Origin: Podarcis filfolensis
Lineage: Eukaryota
Direction: 5' to 3' (one strand)
NCBI GenBank assembly: GCA_964270895.1
Contig: OZ185439.1
Length of the DNA stretch: 64,000 bases
In this document: in pieces, positions 19,983 to 52,245 of the stretch
Numbering within the stretch: position 1 is the stretch's first letter
Layout of the letters: each line of letters opens with the position of its first letter
Made by a program: the position numbers and the translations under genes
The notes under the pieces: model-generated
What the model saw: only the letters and a program-made list of their open reading frames with translations
What the model was told of the DNA's origin: nothing
Database searches by the model: none

Positions 19983-22054
19983 TACAAAACTAATAGCCAA
20001 GTAAGGTGTAAATCCAATTTCCCTCCACACTCCTATTGGAGCTTCAAGTGCACATTGGTGCTACAAATATACATGATTTTGAACTGGCCTGCCACATCAA
20101 CTAACAAAATATTAAACAAGTCACTGTTGAGTGTGCTTTACCAATAGCAATGCAACCGAAGAAATGGACAGGTAATGGAAATGGTTGCTAATATCAATCA
20201 AATATCCTTCCAAATATCAATGAGAGGTGGAGGGTGTTTCGGTTTCCAGCTGAGAGCTGCTGGAAGCATCTTGGTATGTGGCATTCTCTTAATATTTTCA
20301 TCAGAACAAGGATTTGGATTAATGTTTGAATCAACACTGAACATTTCCACAAGGCATGACTCACATCTAACCACGGGGTAGATGCAAGTTAAGCTGGGAA
20401 ACATTTTGAGGTGAGTCCAAGATTTTGCACTGTTGCCAGCTTGAGGGGTGGCTGAAATGTATAAAAAACACACACGTTGCCTTTAAAAACCAAGCAATTT
20501 CAAACATACCGAACCCCTTTTAATAAAAATGTAAGTTACTCCGGGAAGTACTTCAAGGAAATATTCATGATCTCCCACCCTCTTCGACCAGAAATATGAG
20601 AAATTGGATTTCTAAGCAGAGGTTCACATGGCTTATGACAGTCTGAATAAGACCCTCAGGAAATAGCACAACTCTGGCCTAAAGAAACAAAGGTCCAATT
20701 CTTATGACCAAGCAGTCACATGGAGGCCGATCTGTATGGAAAATCATTCATGTGCAGCCACAAACATCTTGTAAATGTGGGTGTGCGGTGGCATGGTGAA
20801 AATCGGAGAATCGGCATGATGAGTGGCTACACATGAATGGCTCACCCTACAAAAAAAGATAACAAAGAGGCCCTCTATACATTATAGCCGTGGTGGGAGA
20901 GAGGCTGCATCCCATGGTGCTGCTGTCATGCTTAAAGGGCCAACACCATATGGGTGGAGCCAGTCAGACAAGTTCTTCCCATGTAATCATCAACCCAACT
21001 GGGACTGGGTGGAAAGCACCCCCACACCATTGGTTCATTCAACAGTACACAGGCCTGGCACCAGCACACGGCATACTGGGGAAAATACTGGGTCACTGGC
21101 ACTGCTCCTAGGCTTTCGCTGCTACTGCAGCTGATGTGGCTCATCTGAGTGGTGGCAGGGATTGAGAGGATGGCAGTTGCAGTGTGTGTAATCTCACAGG
21201 AGACACCATCCCAGATACAGTGGCCCTGCTCCTGGCCCCACTCCCAACAAAGCTGCAGCAAGGGCTTGAGAGGGAGCACTGAGCAGGGCTTCTGGCCTAA
21301 TGTGAAGCTGGAGACCTTCCCAGAAAGCATATGCAATAGCAAGATTATGTTGTTATATCACTAGACGATTCTGATTGGCTACATGGGCTCTGCATATTAG
21401 AATGCCTAAGCAAACATGAATGGCTTTCTCATGCAAAGAGAGAGCCACAGTGCCAAATCGGCAATAACTCAGGAATATCTCTCTCTTTCCCCCCCCCCCT
21501 TTTTTTGAGTGTAATTGTGTCCATTTATTTCTTTATTGCTGTCTTGTCAGAAGGCTTTTTTAAAAAAGAGGAAGAAAGAGATGAAGTAACAAAAACAGCT
21601 GTGTGGTTAAAATTTCCACTCGTGGAACCCTCCAGATTCCCATTAGGCCAATCAGCTTTGTTTAAAATAAGAAAGAAAACCAGACAAAAGTTTCCTGTAG
21701 TGATGCTCTTTTTTATATCTATGTCTATATCCGTCTGAAGAGATAAGGGAACAAATTAGTTTAAAAGAATAAGCTGGCAGTGGGTTAAAGTAATGGCCCT
21801 GCAGTGTTGGTTAAGAAAGTACATGACCCTAAAATACACCCTGTCATCAATCAATCAAACCAACTTTCAGGCAGATACAACATAGAAGGTAGTTCAGTTG
21901 CTCCAGGGACAATGACAAGAGCCTGCCCGATGGTGAATACTCTTCTCCCATGCCACTCTTACACAAAAGCAGTTTAAAAATCCATGTTGTGATAACTAGG
22001 CCTCAGAGAGAAAGGGAGGAGGGGGAGACTGCAGAGGCCTTCCTTGGAATGGGC

Positions 22055-24621
22055 TCATGGGCCAACATCACCAAACGTATCTTGAGATGCGTAGGTAATG
22101 TAGAGGAAGCTGTCATCATCTTTGTTGGCTGCATGGACCTCTGAAACAGTCAGGCTCAGGCAGGGCAGGCTCTTCTTGTTGTTTTTTTAAATAATATTTA
22201 TTACTTTTAAAGATTACAAAAAAGGAAAAGAAAAGAAAAGAAGACAAGAGAGAAAAAAACAAAAGAGGGGAAAAAAACAATACAATATATAGACAATACA
22301 AAACACAACCTAAACACATTAAACTAAACACATTAAACTAAACTAAACAAAATCCTAACCCTAACCCTAAATAAAACAAAACAAAAACAATTTAAAAACA
22401 TACATCACACCTTTTCCATACTCTAGCTTTCATTCCCTTGTTTCCTCGACCTCCTCTCACCTCCCTTTTTGTATTCCACTTCTATTAATTGTTTCAGCAA
22501 ATCCTTTCCATCTTTCTCTATTTTCTATCATATTATAAATATCTTCACATATTTTTAACCTTATTTTCCATTGAGACTAAAATACTTGTATATGCTTAAC
22601 TCCTTATAACATTTCTGCTAAGGCCATAAAATTTCATTCCACCATTTTTCTATCACTCATTAATTTTACAGTATTTCTATATATAAACTTTAAATTTTCC
22701 AATCTTCTTCCACCATCTCCTCTCCCTGGTTTCGGATTCTGCCCGTCCTTTCCGTCAATTCCATATAGTCCATCAACCTGGAGATCTTATGTCCGAGGCT
22801 CTTAACTCTTTTCCAGGTCCCTTCTGCAGGTCTTCTTCATATTCTTTAATGCTAAAGAGCAGATCTCGGGAAGACTCCAACCTAACAATACTTTTATTCC
22901 TTCTGGACAGGTCAGCCAAATTTCCATAGTTGAAGCTAAGATCCATAAAGTGTTTCAGGACATGTTTCAAGATTCCTCCAAATCTAAAAGCCCCCAGAAC
23001 TTCAATCTTCTCCAGACCCAAGTCCATGTCCCAGAAGTCAGTTAATCCCTGCATAGAGGGATCTTTCCAACTTTCCTTCTTCAGTCCAAGCCGGGATCCG
23101 ATCCTCAGAATCTGACTTTTTCTAGGTTCAATCATAAAAGGCCTCAACTTGTAGTCCTCAATTTGCTTCTGTAAGACTGAGGATCCCGCTTGTATTACTT
23201 TAGGTTCAACAACAACAGCTTTCTCCTTCTCCTCCACAATTTGTCCTGCCAAAGTAGATTCCTGTACCAAGTCCTGAATTATTTCTGTGTTGGTACTCAC
23301 TTTTTGTCTCAAATTAATCACTTTTTGTCCCAAGTTGTCAATTTTAAAAGCCATGTCATCCTTCTTATGAAGCTGTTCCAGCGAATAGCTTATCTTGCAT
23401 AATACAGTCACTATGGCTTCTCCTGTCAACATTTTTAAATGTTCCAAGGTCAATCTCTGGTTCTCACAATTTCTTATCTTGCAGCTGGAGATTCCCCAGT
23501 TACACTCCTGTAACAGTTTCAAAAGCTCCCTCTAGAGTGAAACAGTCTCCACTTGTATCAATCCTTTCAAACACAACTCAAGCCATAAAGATAGTTTCAA
23601 TTTTCAGTTACTTTTCCTCCTTTTTAAACGCAGAAGAGGACAATGGAAACAGTATCTTTCTCTTATTTAACTGGCTGTCAAGTACGTTCTGTTTGCAGTC
23701 AATGAACTCTCCCAAAACGTCACTCTTTTTGGCAGCCCGTTTCCAGGTTCAGAGCAGTGGTAATTTGATTTTTCACTCTCTCCTGCAGGCTCGCTAGGTC
23801 CAAAATTTCCCCCCTCTTCTCCTGCTTCCAAGGGGTTTTTTGTAATTTTAACCGATGGGAATTTAATCCTTTGCCAAAGGCTTTCCGAGACTTTAACTTG
23901 TAACGTCTTTGCTTCAATCTATTTACAAAAGAGGAAGGCGGACTTCCTGTTTAAGACCTTCCCGTTTTGGTGCCAAATTAAGGTATTTAAAGATCCAATT
24001 TTCCGTTCTACTCACGGGTAGTTGTTTAAAGTCCAATTGTCCACAGGAAAAAGTCAGCGCTCTCAGGCAACAGCAATGCGGCTTCACTCCATGAAAGAAG
24101 CAGTCAATTCGAAGCACCGCGCCACTCACCCCACGTCGCTCCGGATCCCCAAAACAGGGTTTCCCCGTGACTAGGGGAGGTGCAAAAGGTGCCAGCCAAA
24201 TCCCAGGTTCACAAGCTTCTCCCGCTTGTGATTTCAATGGGTCTCCGCCTTCGCCGTGGCGGTCAGACCCTGCTTTCCACGGAGCAAGTTCTTCCCGATC
24301 GGAGGAGCTCCGCTATTGCTGGAGGCGCCAACCCGGAAGTTCCAGGGCAGGCTCTTGTTGTCCACCAGCAAGTAGAAGGCTTGAGTGGCTGTCAGGGACA
24401 GGCGGGCCCTCAGACTGTAGACAAACTGAGACATAGATAGATCCCCTGAAACCAGGAATTTGAACCGGCTCAACTGAGGGAGTGTCTTCTCCTTCTGGTA
24501 ACGCTCAAGCACCACCGGAATCTTGCTTGGATACTTTGTCCTGATATCCTGTTTCCTGCATCCGAGAGGCTAAACTTTTCCTCTGCTTGAATGGACGGTC
24601 GTCACTCTGGAACCTCAACAT
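22055..24621 (-). pseudogene. MAP1LC3C: Intronless Atg8/LC3-family gene (MAP1LC3C-like), disrupted by a frameshift and an L1 insertion
   Basis: 24621->24343 reads MLRFQSDDRPFKQRKSLASRMQE[frameshift ~24552]QDIRTKYPSKIPVVLERYQKEKTLPQLSRFKFLVSGDLSMSQFVYSLRARLSLTATQAFYLLVDNKSLP(C). 22160->22055 reads LSLTVSEVHAANKDDDSFLYITYASQDTFGDVGP*. Motifs RPFKQRKS, KIPVV.ERY, KFLV, AFYLLV.NKSL and Y.TYASQ.TFG match LC3C. The repaired frame is 128 aa. It may be an LC3C-like paralogue rather than the orthologue. Confidence 0.9.
22175..24342 (-). mobile_element. 5'-complete, internally deleted L1 (half-L1-like, non-autonomous)
   Basis: GC-rich 5' end gaacttccgggttggcgcc; degenerate coiled-coil/RRM-like ORF1 pieces (23917-23720 and 23522-22773); an ORF2 tip at about 22775-22655 homologous to the end of 51261-51965; 3'UTR with AATAAA and A7. 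Perfect 14-bp TSD cagggcaggctctt (22161-22174, 24343-24356). Confidence 0.85.
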
Positions 24622-27539
24622 CTTTCTTTAAAAACACAAAAGACCCTTTTCTCCCCCTCACCGGCCCTTTCCACTTCCACTCTACAGCACTAACTCCAGG
24701 CATATCTCTCTCTGTGCATGTTTTGCGTGACACAGAATCTCATACATAAATACAGAACTTCATAGTAAAGTGCTTTTTAAAATGTCCTTCAAATTTCTTG
24801 TAAGAAAAGTAAAATATTGAAAATTAAGCGGTTCTTCTGAGATTGCATTTGTGGGTTGGGGAAGAAGCAGATCAAGAGGGAATCCAGAGTTTAGCAGCGA
24901 GATTGCACCATCATTTATAATACAATCATCACTTTTGAGTTAACCTAGGCCTTTTTCTTTTCAATAGGCAGGCCAAACTGCAGAATTTGGAACCCAGCAT
25001 AATGAGACTTTAAGCAGAACCCTAAACTATATGACTATACTCAGTCCCAACAAAAAGCCTAGATTTGAAAGGGATCTGCTAGGGTTCTCACACAAAACCC
25101 TTTCAAGTCTGAATCTGTGGGGTTTGGGAATAGGTGACAAGAGGATGCCAGCTTTGTTTTCACAAGCGCATGCTTGTTCTGTGGCTTCATCCCTTGATGC
25201 AATCATGAGATTCGGTAACAGCAGGGGCATCAGGCCTGGTTTGAAGTCTGAGTAGATGAAGAGAAAGGTGCTGGGAAGAAAGAGCCCTAAAGCAAAATCA
25301 AACCAACTTGCAAGCTCTGATGTCCGCCAAAAGAAAGGAGCACATGCCCTGTGTCTCTTGTCTCTGCTCATAGCATGAGCTGCCTCCATGTAGGAGCATG
25401 TGATTTTGAGCGATCTGAAATTGCTCTGTGAAAAGCGTCTGCTATCAATTACTTATTCATGTTGTTTCCGACAGCTAAAAATAAACCAACTTTTGTATAC
25501 GTACTGTGATGCAGGAAGTATACTAAACAATGTGAGGGATTAAATTGAAATTTTCAGAGCAAAACTACCAATGCATAAAGACCAATCTGGAGAAGAAACT
25601 TGTGTGTGTGTTTGTGTGGCTGGAGTGTGGGTGCACATTTCATACTTTGTCTTCTGTTTGAGTATGGATGTGTGGCAACTTAGACCCACCTTTTTTCTGA
25701 ATAGATTTTCTTTCTTGATCATTATCCTCCCCACTCCCCACCCCCCAATACTAACTAAACTTCCCTATGCTACCTTCAGCCTTGCTAATCAGCCACAAGT
25801 TACACCACTCTCACCAATGGATCCCCTTCTCTCTTTATCTCTGTCAAGTTGGGTTATACTGGAGGAGTCCAACACATTTTTCAGTTGGAGCTGGACATCA
25901 GCATTATTCAAGCCTGTGGGTCTGCAGAAAAGGAAATTGCGAAACATGGACTATCCTTTTCAAATTGAGAGCACTGTGGCAAATTATCTCTGTGGGAACT
26001 GAGAGCACAATCTAGAAGCCCCTGGTATTGCCACATGCAGAGATGGACACATAGGGTGCTGGCCATGCTGGAAATAACAATGCAGCTTCATGCGCTTCTG
26101 GCATGGTAGGCACCCTCTAATTATAATTGTCACAGCAAATGCCACAGTATAAGTATGCACAGACAGAGATGCTGATTTCACCTTCTGAATGAAACCACTT
26201 TCAAACTTTTTCTTTAGATGATAGGAAGGCTCATGCAGGAAGGGATATTCGCTTGGACGCACTAGCCCCAAGTCACATGGAATTTTACATACACAAATGT
26301 AAGACACATCAGATGTAATTTTTAGGCATTACAGAGCAGCCCTTTGGGAAGGGATTTAGAGCCTATGCTTTGGATGTAAAAGCCTCAAGGGCAATCTGGG
26401 ACCTCTCTGGTAGCCTGATGGGGTAAGACCATTGCCTAAGGCCTCAGAGAGAGGTGGCTATACATATGCAGCAAGCACTCTTTGCTGTTAAATCATTTGC
26501 TCTCCCATCCCTAAGTGGACGTGTGCAAAGGAGGCAGGCTGTTAAATGAACGTTCATGAATTACTTATCCACTGCTGTGAATTTATCAAGCCCTGTACAA
26601 GCAAGGGGACCAGGCATGTTTATAGAAACCCATTCCACCTTGTCCTCCTGATTCACTTTCCATTCTGCCCCCAAGCCATTCAAAGCCTGGAATCAAGAGG
26701 AGCCGGAAAGGTTGTTCCAGGATTAAGTGAGTAGTCTGTGCCTAGTCATAACAGAAAAGCATTTAATTGAACAGTTGTTGGGCTGCATTAACAAAGACTA
26801 CTCAAGGCACATGAGTTATGCATCCTTTCTTCTTTTCACCTTTCTCTCCCCACTACCCAGTTACCCAATTACTTTTGTTGGGCTAAGCATGTGACAACAT
26901 CACAGCATCTACAAAGCACAGATGTTGTCATGGCAATGGCAATGGCACTAGCACATGACACAAACACACGGGTTGCTGCTTGAAATGCAAAGTCTTGTCT
27001 CATGCACACCCTGGGCTGATGGAAATTGCAGCCACTGGTTTGGATGCTCTTTGTCTGGGCTCAGCGATTGCTGGAGATTTGCAATAGGATTTTAGACATG
27101 TCTCTCTGCATGAAGTTACAGCTTCACCTTTCCAGGCAAAGAGAATAAAGAAGGGTTCTTTTTAAGGAGAGGAACATCAATGAAGAAATGAATGTACACT
27201 AATATGAAATAATTTTCACTAGTCTACTGAGGTGGGGTGGAGGAACATGACCTGGAAGCAACAGTTTCATTATCAAGACTGCCAAGAACTCACATGGAAA
27301 CCACTCTCTCTCAGCGTTTGGTTACCATTTGTAATATGTGGTATTAACATTGGTCTGCTTTACAGGAATGTTGGAAATAAATATTTGGGATCCACTGAGC
27401 AGTAAACATGATTGGATTGCCAAGTAATGGCAACATCTCCAGCCCATCTGGCTTCCAATGAAGCAAGGAGCTGAGGCCTTGGAACATACAAGGCAAGGTC
27501 GCTACAAACCCAAGTTTTAAGATCAGGAGAGGCAACCCT

Positions 27540-51223: not shown

Positions 51224-52245
51224 TGAAGTTTTCAAACTGGACAGGAAAATTGGCTTCCAGGTGGAGAGGTCAAAATTAGAAACAGAGCTATTGGAACCCA
51301 ATACTAAGAATCTGTCAAGAATGTACAACTTGCTGTTGAAATGGAATACACAGGATGAGACGGTTAAATCAGCTATGATTAAATGGGCACAAGACATTGG
51401 TCATAACATTATGTTTGCTGACTGGGAACAGTTATGGACCACCGGTATAAAGTTCACGGCATGTAATGCCTTAAGAGAGAACATTATGAAAATGATATAT
51501 AGGTGGTACATGACCCCAGTCAAGCTTGCAAAAATTTATCATACGCCCAATAATAAATGTTGGAAATGTAAGGAAACTGAAGGTACTTTCTACCACCTTT
51601 GGTGGACGTGCCCAAGGATCAAGGTCTTCTGGGAAATGATTTATAATGAAATGAAAAAGGTGCTTAAATGCACATTCGTGAAGAAACCAGAAGCCTTCCT
51701 CCTGGGCATGGTAGGCCAATTGGTGTCAAGGAAAGATAGGACGTTTTTTATGTATGCTACAACAGCAGCAAGAGTACTTTTAGCAAAGTATTGGAAGACA
51801 CAAGAACTACCCACACTGGAAGAATGGCAGACCAAGGTGATCGACTACATGGGACTGGCGGAGATGACTGGCAGAATCCGTGACCAAGGGAAAGAGACGG
51901 TGGAAGAAGACTGGAAGAAATTTAAAGTTTATCTTAAGAATTGTTGTAAAATTAATGAATGTTAAAATGTCTTGGGTAATGCAAAATAGAATTGCAGTGA
52001 CAAACAATTGGATATGAGAAAAAAGATTTAAAGAAAGTGCTATAAGAAATTGAAATTAGGGGTTGCTGGAATGATTTAAAACAGGGATGCAGAAAGGGGA
52101 GGTATGGGGAAGTCGCTGAAAGAAGGTTTTAGGAAAGAAAGGTCAAGAAATTATACGTGTTTATATGTTTGTTTGTTTATGTATTGTGTTGTATTGTCTT
52201 TAATATGTGTTGAAAAACCAATAAAAAATTTATATATAAAAAAAA
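51224..52245 (+). mobile_element. 5'-truncated L1 (ORF2 C-terminal Cys-rich region, 3'UTR, polyA)
   Basis: Open frame 51261-51965 with CWKCKETEGTFYHLWWTCP (L1 CCHC-type motif) and AARVLLAKYWK; aataaa and an A-tail. Perfect 18-bp TSD tagagtctggcaagactg (51206-51223, 52246-52263). Confidence 0.93.

Follow-up and report, generated by a model that had tools for sequence, protein, structure and literature searches.

A putative processed pseudogene of a lacertid MAP1LC3C-like gene, split by an L1-like insert, in Podarcis filfolensis

Processed copies of Atg8 genes are known from mammals, and full-length retrocopies made by the L1 machinery are known to carry an extra G, derived from the mRNA cap, at their 5' end. 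Here we describe a 64,000-nucleotide stretch of Podarcis filfolensis DNA (contig OZ185439.1 of assembly GCA_964270895.1; referred to below as the window), in which the minus strand from position 24697 to ~21487 holds a broken coding sequence of the Atg8 family. This segment is read as a processed pseudogene of the lacertid MAP1LC3C-like gene that has been decaying neutrally and was later split by an L1-like insert, and we place the probability of this reading at about 0.93. Compared with L1-mediated processed pseudogenes, the locus matches in its spliced full-length mRNA content, 5' G, poly(A) remnant, 16-nucleotide (nt) duplication, unlinked position, and neutral decay; it differs only in that a non-autonomous L1-like element was later inserted within it.

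The coding sequence and its parent belong to the same Atg8 ubiquitin-like fold family as MAP1LC3C, for which human LC3C structures (3WAM, 5DPW, and 3VVW) and the LC3C proteins of turtles and birds served as references, and they share with it an N terminus of the form RPFK(Q/L)RKS. They differ from MAP1LC3C in that core identity amounts to ~64%, in that the LC3C-like genes encode FLVS rather than FLVP and mostly LDR rather than LDK, and in that the long C-terminal peptide of LC3C is missing from them. When the middle piece of the P. filfolensis coding sequence was searched against proteins, intact 128-amino-acid products annotated as MAP1LC3C-like were returned from Lacerta agilis (96% identity), Zootoca vivipara (90%), and other squamates and turtles (73 to 84%), whereas true LC3C from turtles and birds was no more than 64% identical. 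Members of the same protein clusters added P. muralis, P. raffonei, and P. lilfordi, and identity to the Podarcis protein over the middle piece was likewise 96%. In a protein tree, a turtle-plus-squamate LC3C-like clade stood apart from LC3C with 99/96 support, and the lacertid stem within this family was long (0.31 changes per site). Because the tree sets the LC3C-like clade apart with this long stem, the distance of the P. filfolensis copy from LC3C is a property inherited from the parent. Thus, the strong divergence from LC3C that the initial annotation of this sequence had remarked upon is real, but it belongs to the clade of the parent and was not acquired by the copy.

The parent, represented by L. 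agilis XP_032998409.1 and by Podarcis XP_028576821.1 and XP_053225323.1, encodes a protein of 128 amino acids. It was found intact in L. agilis, P. muralis, P. raffonei, P. lilfordi, and Z. vivipara, where four coding exons are separated by three GT-AG introns of ~370, 570 to 740, and 165 to 185 bp. The gene spans ~1.5 kb in the first four of these species; in Zootoca, the annotated model covers ~4.3 kb and its four homologous exons ~2.3 kb. The parent lies ~1 Mb from the end of a chromosome of 120 to 127 Mb, and in P. raffonei it is located on CM049751.1, whereas the retrocopy orthologous to that of P. filfolensis is on CM049754.1. Its C-terminal tail reads DVGP in Lacerta and Zootoca and DIGP in Podarcis. 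The lacertid parent is, judging by sequence comparison, a fast-evolving gene. Between Lacerta and Podarcis, its ratio of nonsynonymous to synonymous changes (N:S) was ~7:4, and the comparison of Zootoca with Podarcis gave ~14:6. Changes were also seen in residues next to the strand that docks the LC3-interacting region, with LDK or LDR changed to LSR or LGR in the lacertid parent and FLVP changed to FLVS throughout the LC3C-like clade. A literature search on a reptile LC3C-like paralogue or on MAP1LC3 retrogenes yielded nothing specific. When set beside this parent, the P. filfolensis copy is colinear with it from the 5' untranslated region (UTR) through the 128 codons to the 3' UTR, is 96.7% identical to the Podarcis mRNA, and has kept the RPFKQRKS helix, G124, and a four-residue tail. 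Unlike the parent, it is intronless and resides at another locus, with a shifted frame, an interrupting insert, and replacements at invariant residues.

The presence of a hidden 128-amino-acid Atg8/LC3-like coding sequence, as claimed in the initial annotation, was borne out by three pieces on the minus strand. The first (24621 to 24550, codons 1 to 24) translates to MLRFQSDDRPFKQRKSLASRMQET and contains the former exon 1/2 junction at 24570|24569. The second, which follows a change of frame (24548 to 24345, codons 26 to 93; DIRTKYP...DNKSLP), translates to DIRTKYPSKIPVVLERYQKEKTLPQLSRFKFLVSGDLSMSQFVYSLRARLSLTATQAFYLLVDNKSLP, which begins with DIRTKYPSKIPVV and ends with LLVDNKSLP; its 68 codons run across the former exon junctions at 24516|24515 and 24409|24408. 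The third, beyond the insert (22162 to 22055, codons 94 to 128), translates to CLSLTVSEVHAANKDDDSFLYITYASQDTFGDVGP and a stop, so that 24 codons, 1 broken codon, 68 codons, and 35 codons make up the 128. Removal of positions 22161 to 24342, as had been proposed, resulted in a clean join. The Pfam ATG8 profile (PF02991) matched the middle piece over profile positions 8 to 72 (E = 4.6e-19; 69 bits) and the C-terminal piece over positions 76 to 104 (E = 2.2e-6; 28.2 bits against a cutoff of 27). In searches of the PDB, human LC3C was the top match of the middle piece (E = 1e-19); for the C-terminal piece, LC3B was nearest and LC3C came just after. LC3A was also among the matches of the two pieces. 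The C terminus reads YASQDTFG, followed by DVGP and the stop. Both G124, the glycine for lipidation, and the DVGP tail, to which attention had been drawn before, are therefore present, but they were simply inherited from the parent.

No uninterrupted Atg8 reading frame was found in the copy: codon 25 has lost 2 nt, and an insert of 2.16 kb separates codons 93 and 94. The 2-nt lesion, previously suspected near this position, was confirmed by alignment with five parent mRNAs and three other retrocopies. It lies at 24549|24548 on the minus strand (24548 to 24549), where ACT has become a single G through the deletion and one substitution; the P. filfolensis copy reads GGAAACAG--GATATC where 8/8 of the other aligned sequences read GGAAACAACTGATATC. 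The deletion lies outside any homopolymer run. Further coding changes were confined to the P. filfolensis copy: V54F in the middle piece, Y103H and G111S in the C-terminal piece, and two synonymous substitutions. Neither Y103 (the Y of E[VI]Y) nor G111 (the G of DGF) varied among 15 intact proteins of the LC3C-like and LC3C types, and both are replaced here.

The ends of the locus indicated how it arose. Homology to the parent was limited to the mature mRNA, starting at the mRNA 5' end directly after a short duplication and stopping at the poly(A) site, and no homology to parent introns, promoter, or flanking DNA was detected at the retrocopy locus. All three parent introns are missing, and the retrocopy continues without a break across 24570|24569, 24516|24515, and 24409|24408. 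All of the following features lie on the minus strand. The 5' copy of a 16-nt target-site duplication (agagagagatatGcct; 24698 to 24713) recurs with 1 mismatch as agagagagatatTcct at 21486 to 21471, directly after the tail remnant, so that 24713 to 24698 and 21486 to 21471 are identical at 15/16 positions. A non-templated G at 24697 precedes the first mRNA base and is followed by 75 nt of retrocopied 5' UTR (24622 to 24696), with 0/75 differences from the P. raffonei parent. The retrocopied 3' UTR (21507 to 22054), which has AATAAA signals near its end, showed 22/542 differences from the same parent, compared with 11/385 in the coding sequence, both from a gapped alignment. It ends in a degenerate poly(A) tail remnant, A7 G11 AA (21487 to 21506). 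In the parent genome a T precedes GAGTTAGTG, whereas a G is found there in three independent retrocopies, namely, that of P. filfolensis and two described below (L006 from P. raffonei and L007 from Z. vivipara), all of which also share the same start base; in the P. filfolensis copy, this G may instead belong to the target-site duplication as its final base. The introns are missing, and the cap-derived G, tail remnant, and 16-nt duplication are present, because the copy arose from mRNA, probably by way of LINE (long interspersed element) machinery. A capped, polyadenylated, and fully spliced parent mRNA would have been reverse transcribed and inserted by machinery of the L1 type. The earlier proposal that the sequence is intronless and retro-derived was thus upheld by both the fused exon junctions and the hallmarks of retrocopying.

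Decay of the poly(A) tail took a different form in the two Podarcis species, with A7 followed by G11 in P. filfolensis and (AAAAG)n running into (AG)n in P. raffonei (L002:11382-11410). Gene conversion of the 5' half was also considered, as BLAST gave 98.6% identity for the 5' half but 92.5% for the 3' half; it was ruled out because the gapped alignment traced the low 3' identity to indels and a small scrambled, microsatellite-like patch.

The same retrocopy was present between the same flanks in P. raffonei, at a locus on CM049754.1 (L002) that aligns colinearly with the window over 22 kb at 2.7% mismatches, a level comparable to the 1.6 to 2.0% found between Podarcis species at the parent locus. 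Since L002 carries the retrocopy at the syntenic site, the retrocopy is older than the split between P. filfolensis and P. raffonei. The two copies share a 7-nt deletion in the 3' UTR and substitutions at codons 100 and 109. L002 lacks the L1-like insert, with a single empty site at L002 10329 to 10347, and also lacks the 2-nt deletion in codon 25. It has lesions of its own: a 16-nt deletion has removed codons 2 to 7 and with them the native start, and R20W, S52R, V58D, A104T, and three synonymous changes have accumulated, of which R20W and V58D replace residues that are invariant in the 15 intact family members. Moreover, a short interspersed element (SINE)-like insertion of ~365 bp, headed by a tRNA-like sequence and accompanied by a target duplication of 14 nt, lies in its 3' UTR (L002:10694-11058) and is absent from the P. 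filfolensis window, where the join is at 21808 to 21821. The interval L002:10001-10453 is annotated as RefSeq protein XP_053243403.1, an LC3C-like product of 150 amino acids. This length results from the 16-nt deletion, which puts an ATG of the former 5' UTR in frame, and the gene annotated for XP_053243403.1 is probably a pseudogene.

These comparisons are consistent with a history in which the mRNA copy was inserted in the Podarcis stem lineage, shortly ahead of the separation of P. filfolensis and P. raffonei. On the P. filfolensis branch, the copy then acquired the 2-nt deletion in codon 25, V54F, Y103H, G111S, and the 2.16-kb insertion at codon 93/94; on the P. raffonei branch it independently lost its native start through the 16-nt deletion and gained R20W, V58D, and the SINE in the 3' UTR. 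The P. filfolensis copy differs from Podarcis parent mRNAs at 33 to 38 of 1,002 sites, the lowest value being 3.3%. In a maximum-likelihood (ML) tree of the 1-kb mRNA equivalent, the P. filfolensis and L002 copies paired with 68% support, and the pair left the Podarcis parent stem after Lacerta with 83% support; the shared retrocopy stem measured 0.0025, and the tips measured 0.023 (P. filfolensis) and 0.021 (L002). The P. filfolensis copy keeps the ancestral S100 and V126, both of which the Podarcis parent changed later. The short stem, long tips, and low divergence from the parent therefore leave no room for a long constrained phase.

The rate of change since the split was in keeping with this. 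Between the P. filfolensis copy and L002, 13/369 coding differences were counted where 9.9 were expected at the rate of the flanks, and the post-split N:S was 7-8:5 against a neutral expectation of 70 to 77% nonsynonymous (P = 0.12 to 0.33). In contrast, the parent coding sequences of three Podarcis species showed 0 to 1 differences in 387 positions where 6 to 8 were expected (P ≤ 0.005). Purifying selection was not evident between the two copies, whose rate and N:S are neutral-like, nor is the native reading frame intact in the P. raffonei orthologue, which has lost its start codon. The retrocopy appears to drift at about the neutral rate, with no sign of selective retention, and the contrast in rates, the hits at invariant residues, and the independent lesions agree in pointing to neutral decay.

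The competing explanation that survives best, although we regard it as very unlikely, is that put forward in the initial annotation: a retrogene or single-exon paralogue that was long held under constraint and was recently knocked out by the frameshift and the L1, so that an autophagy paralogue would have been lost in this lineage. It can draw on there being only two frank lesions, on the absence of stops created by point mutation together with the retained G124 and tail, on the fact that insertion and frameshift are both lineage-specific, on a post-split N:S of ~1.5:1 that falls nominally under the neutral 2.4-3.4:1, and on the protein annotation carried by the P. raffonei copy. However, the copy is young, at 3.3% from the parent and with a stem of 0.0025 shared with P. 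raffonei, and since the split its coding sequence has changed at least as fast as the flanks, while the parents are nearly frozen. Family-invariant residues have been replaced in both species, and the P. raffonei "protein" exists only through the deletion that fuses the frame to the former 5' UTR ATG. The four-exon parent, moreover, is intact in every lacertid examined, and hence no paralogue was lost. What was found instead of a long-lived gene under constraint was near-identity to an intron-containing parent (seen in congeners) with neutral change, together with independent lesions in the P. raffonei relative.

Several observations weigh against the processed-pseudogene reading and were taken into account. 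Premature stops caused by point mutation are absent from the P. filfolensis retrocopy. The parent was seen in three Podarcis congeners and two other lacertids, and in the P. filfolensis genome it is only presumed to be intact. That retroposition followed the Lacerta split is supported at no more than 83%. The N:S test alone is weak, because 12 to 13 changes are too few to exclude weak constraint and because the lacertid parents' own high N:S (~7:4 and 14:6) makes the ratio by itself a poor discriminator. Finally, an error of assembly could in principle account for the 2-nt deletion.

The element that splits the copy is a non-autonomous L1-like insert of 2,160 bp (22183 to 24342), on the same (minus) strand as the pseudogene. 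It is flanked by an upstream copy of a 19-nt target-site duplication (cagggcaggctcttgttgt; 24343 to 24361), for which P. raffonei has the single copy at L002 10329 to 10347, and by a downstream copy of 19 nt plus a 3-nt slip (22161 to 22182). The insert consists of a 5' region, an open reading frame (ORF) of 249 codons (23522 to 22773), a segment with homology to the end of ORF2 (22779 to 22647), and a 3' UTR, and it ends in a short A7 tail (22189 to 22183) that adjoins the duplication. The 249-codon ORF leads directly into ~130 nt that share 80% identity with the last part of an ORF located at window positions 51261 to 51965. The latter, on the plus strand, has 234 codons and is grouped by the Atlas with zf-RVT/LORF2-type C termini of chordate LINE ORF2. 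Repeats of the telomere-like unit CCCTAA were observed in the 3' UTR of the insert, together with short tandem repeats of aaacacattaaactaaac (22330 to 22375). A Pfam scan of the 249-amino-acid ORF detected no L1 ORF1 domain, and Atlas leads for this product as an ORF1 were weak (0.71 to 0.75). Recognizable L1 ORF2 in the insert is limited to the last ~130 nt, with no endonuclease or reverse transcriptase, and the insert is therefore non-autonomous. The label "L1-like" is based on the homology to the tail of ORF2 and on the hallmarks of insertion only; the hallmarks of LINE-1-type insertion that were found are the 19-nt duplication, the A7 tail, and the empty site in P. raffonei. An L1-like insertion with a duplication inside the coding sequence, specific to this lineage, had been predicted from the sequence, and its absence from P. 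raffonei agrees with that prediction. The insertion, which is specific to this lineage, is probably recent, but it struck DNA that had already become nonfunctional.

We considered it highly improbable that the disruption is in part an artefact, such that the 2-nt deletion would be an assembly or consensus error, the insert would be heterozygous or polymorphic, and an uninterrupted ORF would persist in the population. A single assembly is at hand, and the insert looks young from its near-perfect 19-nt duplication and open 249-codon ORF. Nevertheless, the deletion does not lie in a homopolymer run, and an uninterrupted allele would still carry Y103H, G111S, and V54F and evolve neutrally. That the locus is a segmental duplicate made at the DNA level, or a single-exon gene of ancestral origin, is scarcely credible: its lack of introns is all that speaks for this, whereas the bounds of homology at the mRNA 5' end and poly(A) site, the unmatched parent introns, promoter, and flanks, and the tail remnant, target-site duplication, and extra 5' G all stand against it.

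Other retrocopies of the same parent were encountered in the lacertid genomes. In P. raffonei, L006:9925-10958 (CM049757.1) is a second full-length retrocopy of very young age, with 100% identity to the spliced mRNA of the parent across 1,019 nt. It has an intact ORF, an extra G at its 5' end, a tail of A9, and a 14-nt duplication (AGATGACTTTGTAC), and it sits, in the opposite orientation, within an intron of a peptidylarginine deiminase (PAD) gene. The Z. vivipara retrocopy L007:2925-3943 (OY735907.1), likewise full length but of independent origin, showed 11/1,015 differences from the Zootoca parent and has an intact 128-amino-acid ORF and an extra G at the same transcription start; it lies in an intron of a G-alpha gene. 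P. muralis has two further LC3C-like products (P0026/P0028 and P0027), 1 to 2 residues from the parent and with the derived A100 and I126, which are presumably more young copies. The parent was thus retrocopied at least three separate times as a full-length capped mRNA. On one reading, the parent may be of more interest than the P. filfolensis copy: the repeated retrocopying of this fast-evolving gene would imply strong expression in the germline, some of the young intact copies (L006, L007, and the two from P. muralis) could be functional retrogenes, and the P. filfolensis copy could have been briefly functional before it decayed; we view this as unlikely, if less so than any of the alternatives to the processed-pseudogene reading.

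For the Atg8 family in lacertids, these results indicate that no autophagy paralogue was lost; a dead retrocopy was hit by a further mobile element, and the event by itself carries little biological weight. For annotation, the 150-amino-acid XP_053243403.1 of P. raffonei is likely a pseudogene artefact. The nested insertions, i.e., the retrocopy, the L1-like element, and the P. raffonei SINE, can serve as clean markers, scored by presence or absence, of Podarcis phylogeny and of L1 activity in the recent past. The multiple full-length copies point to germline expression of a fast-evolving and seemingly unstudied reptile LC3C-like gene.

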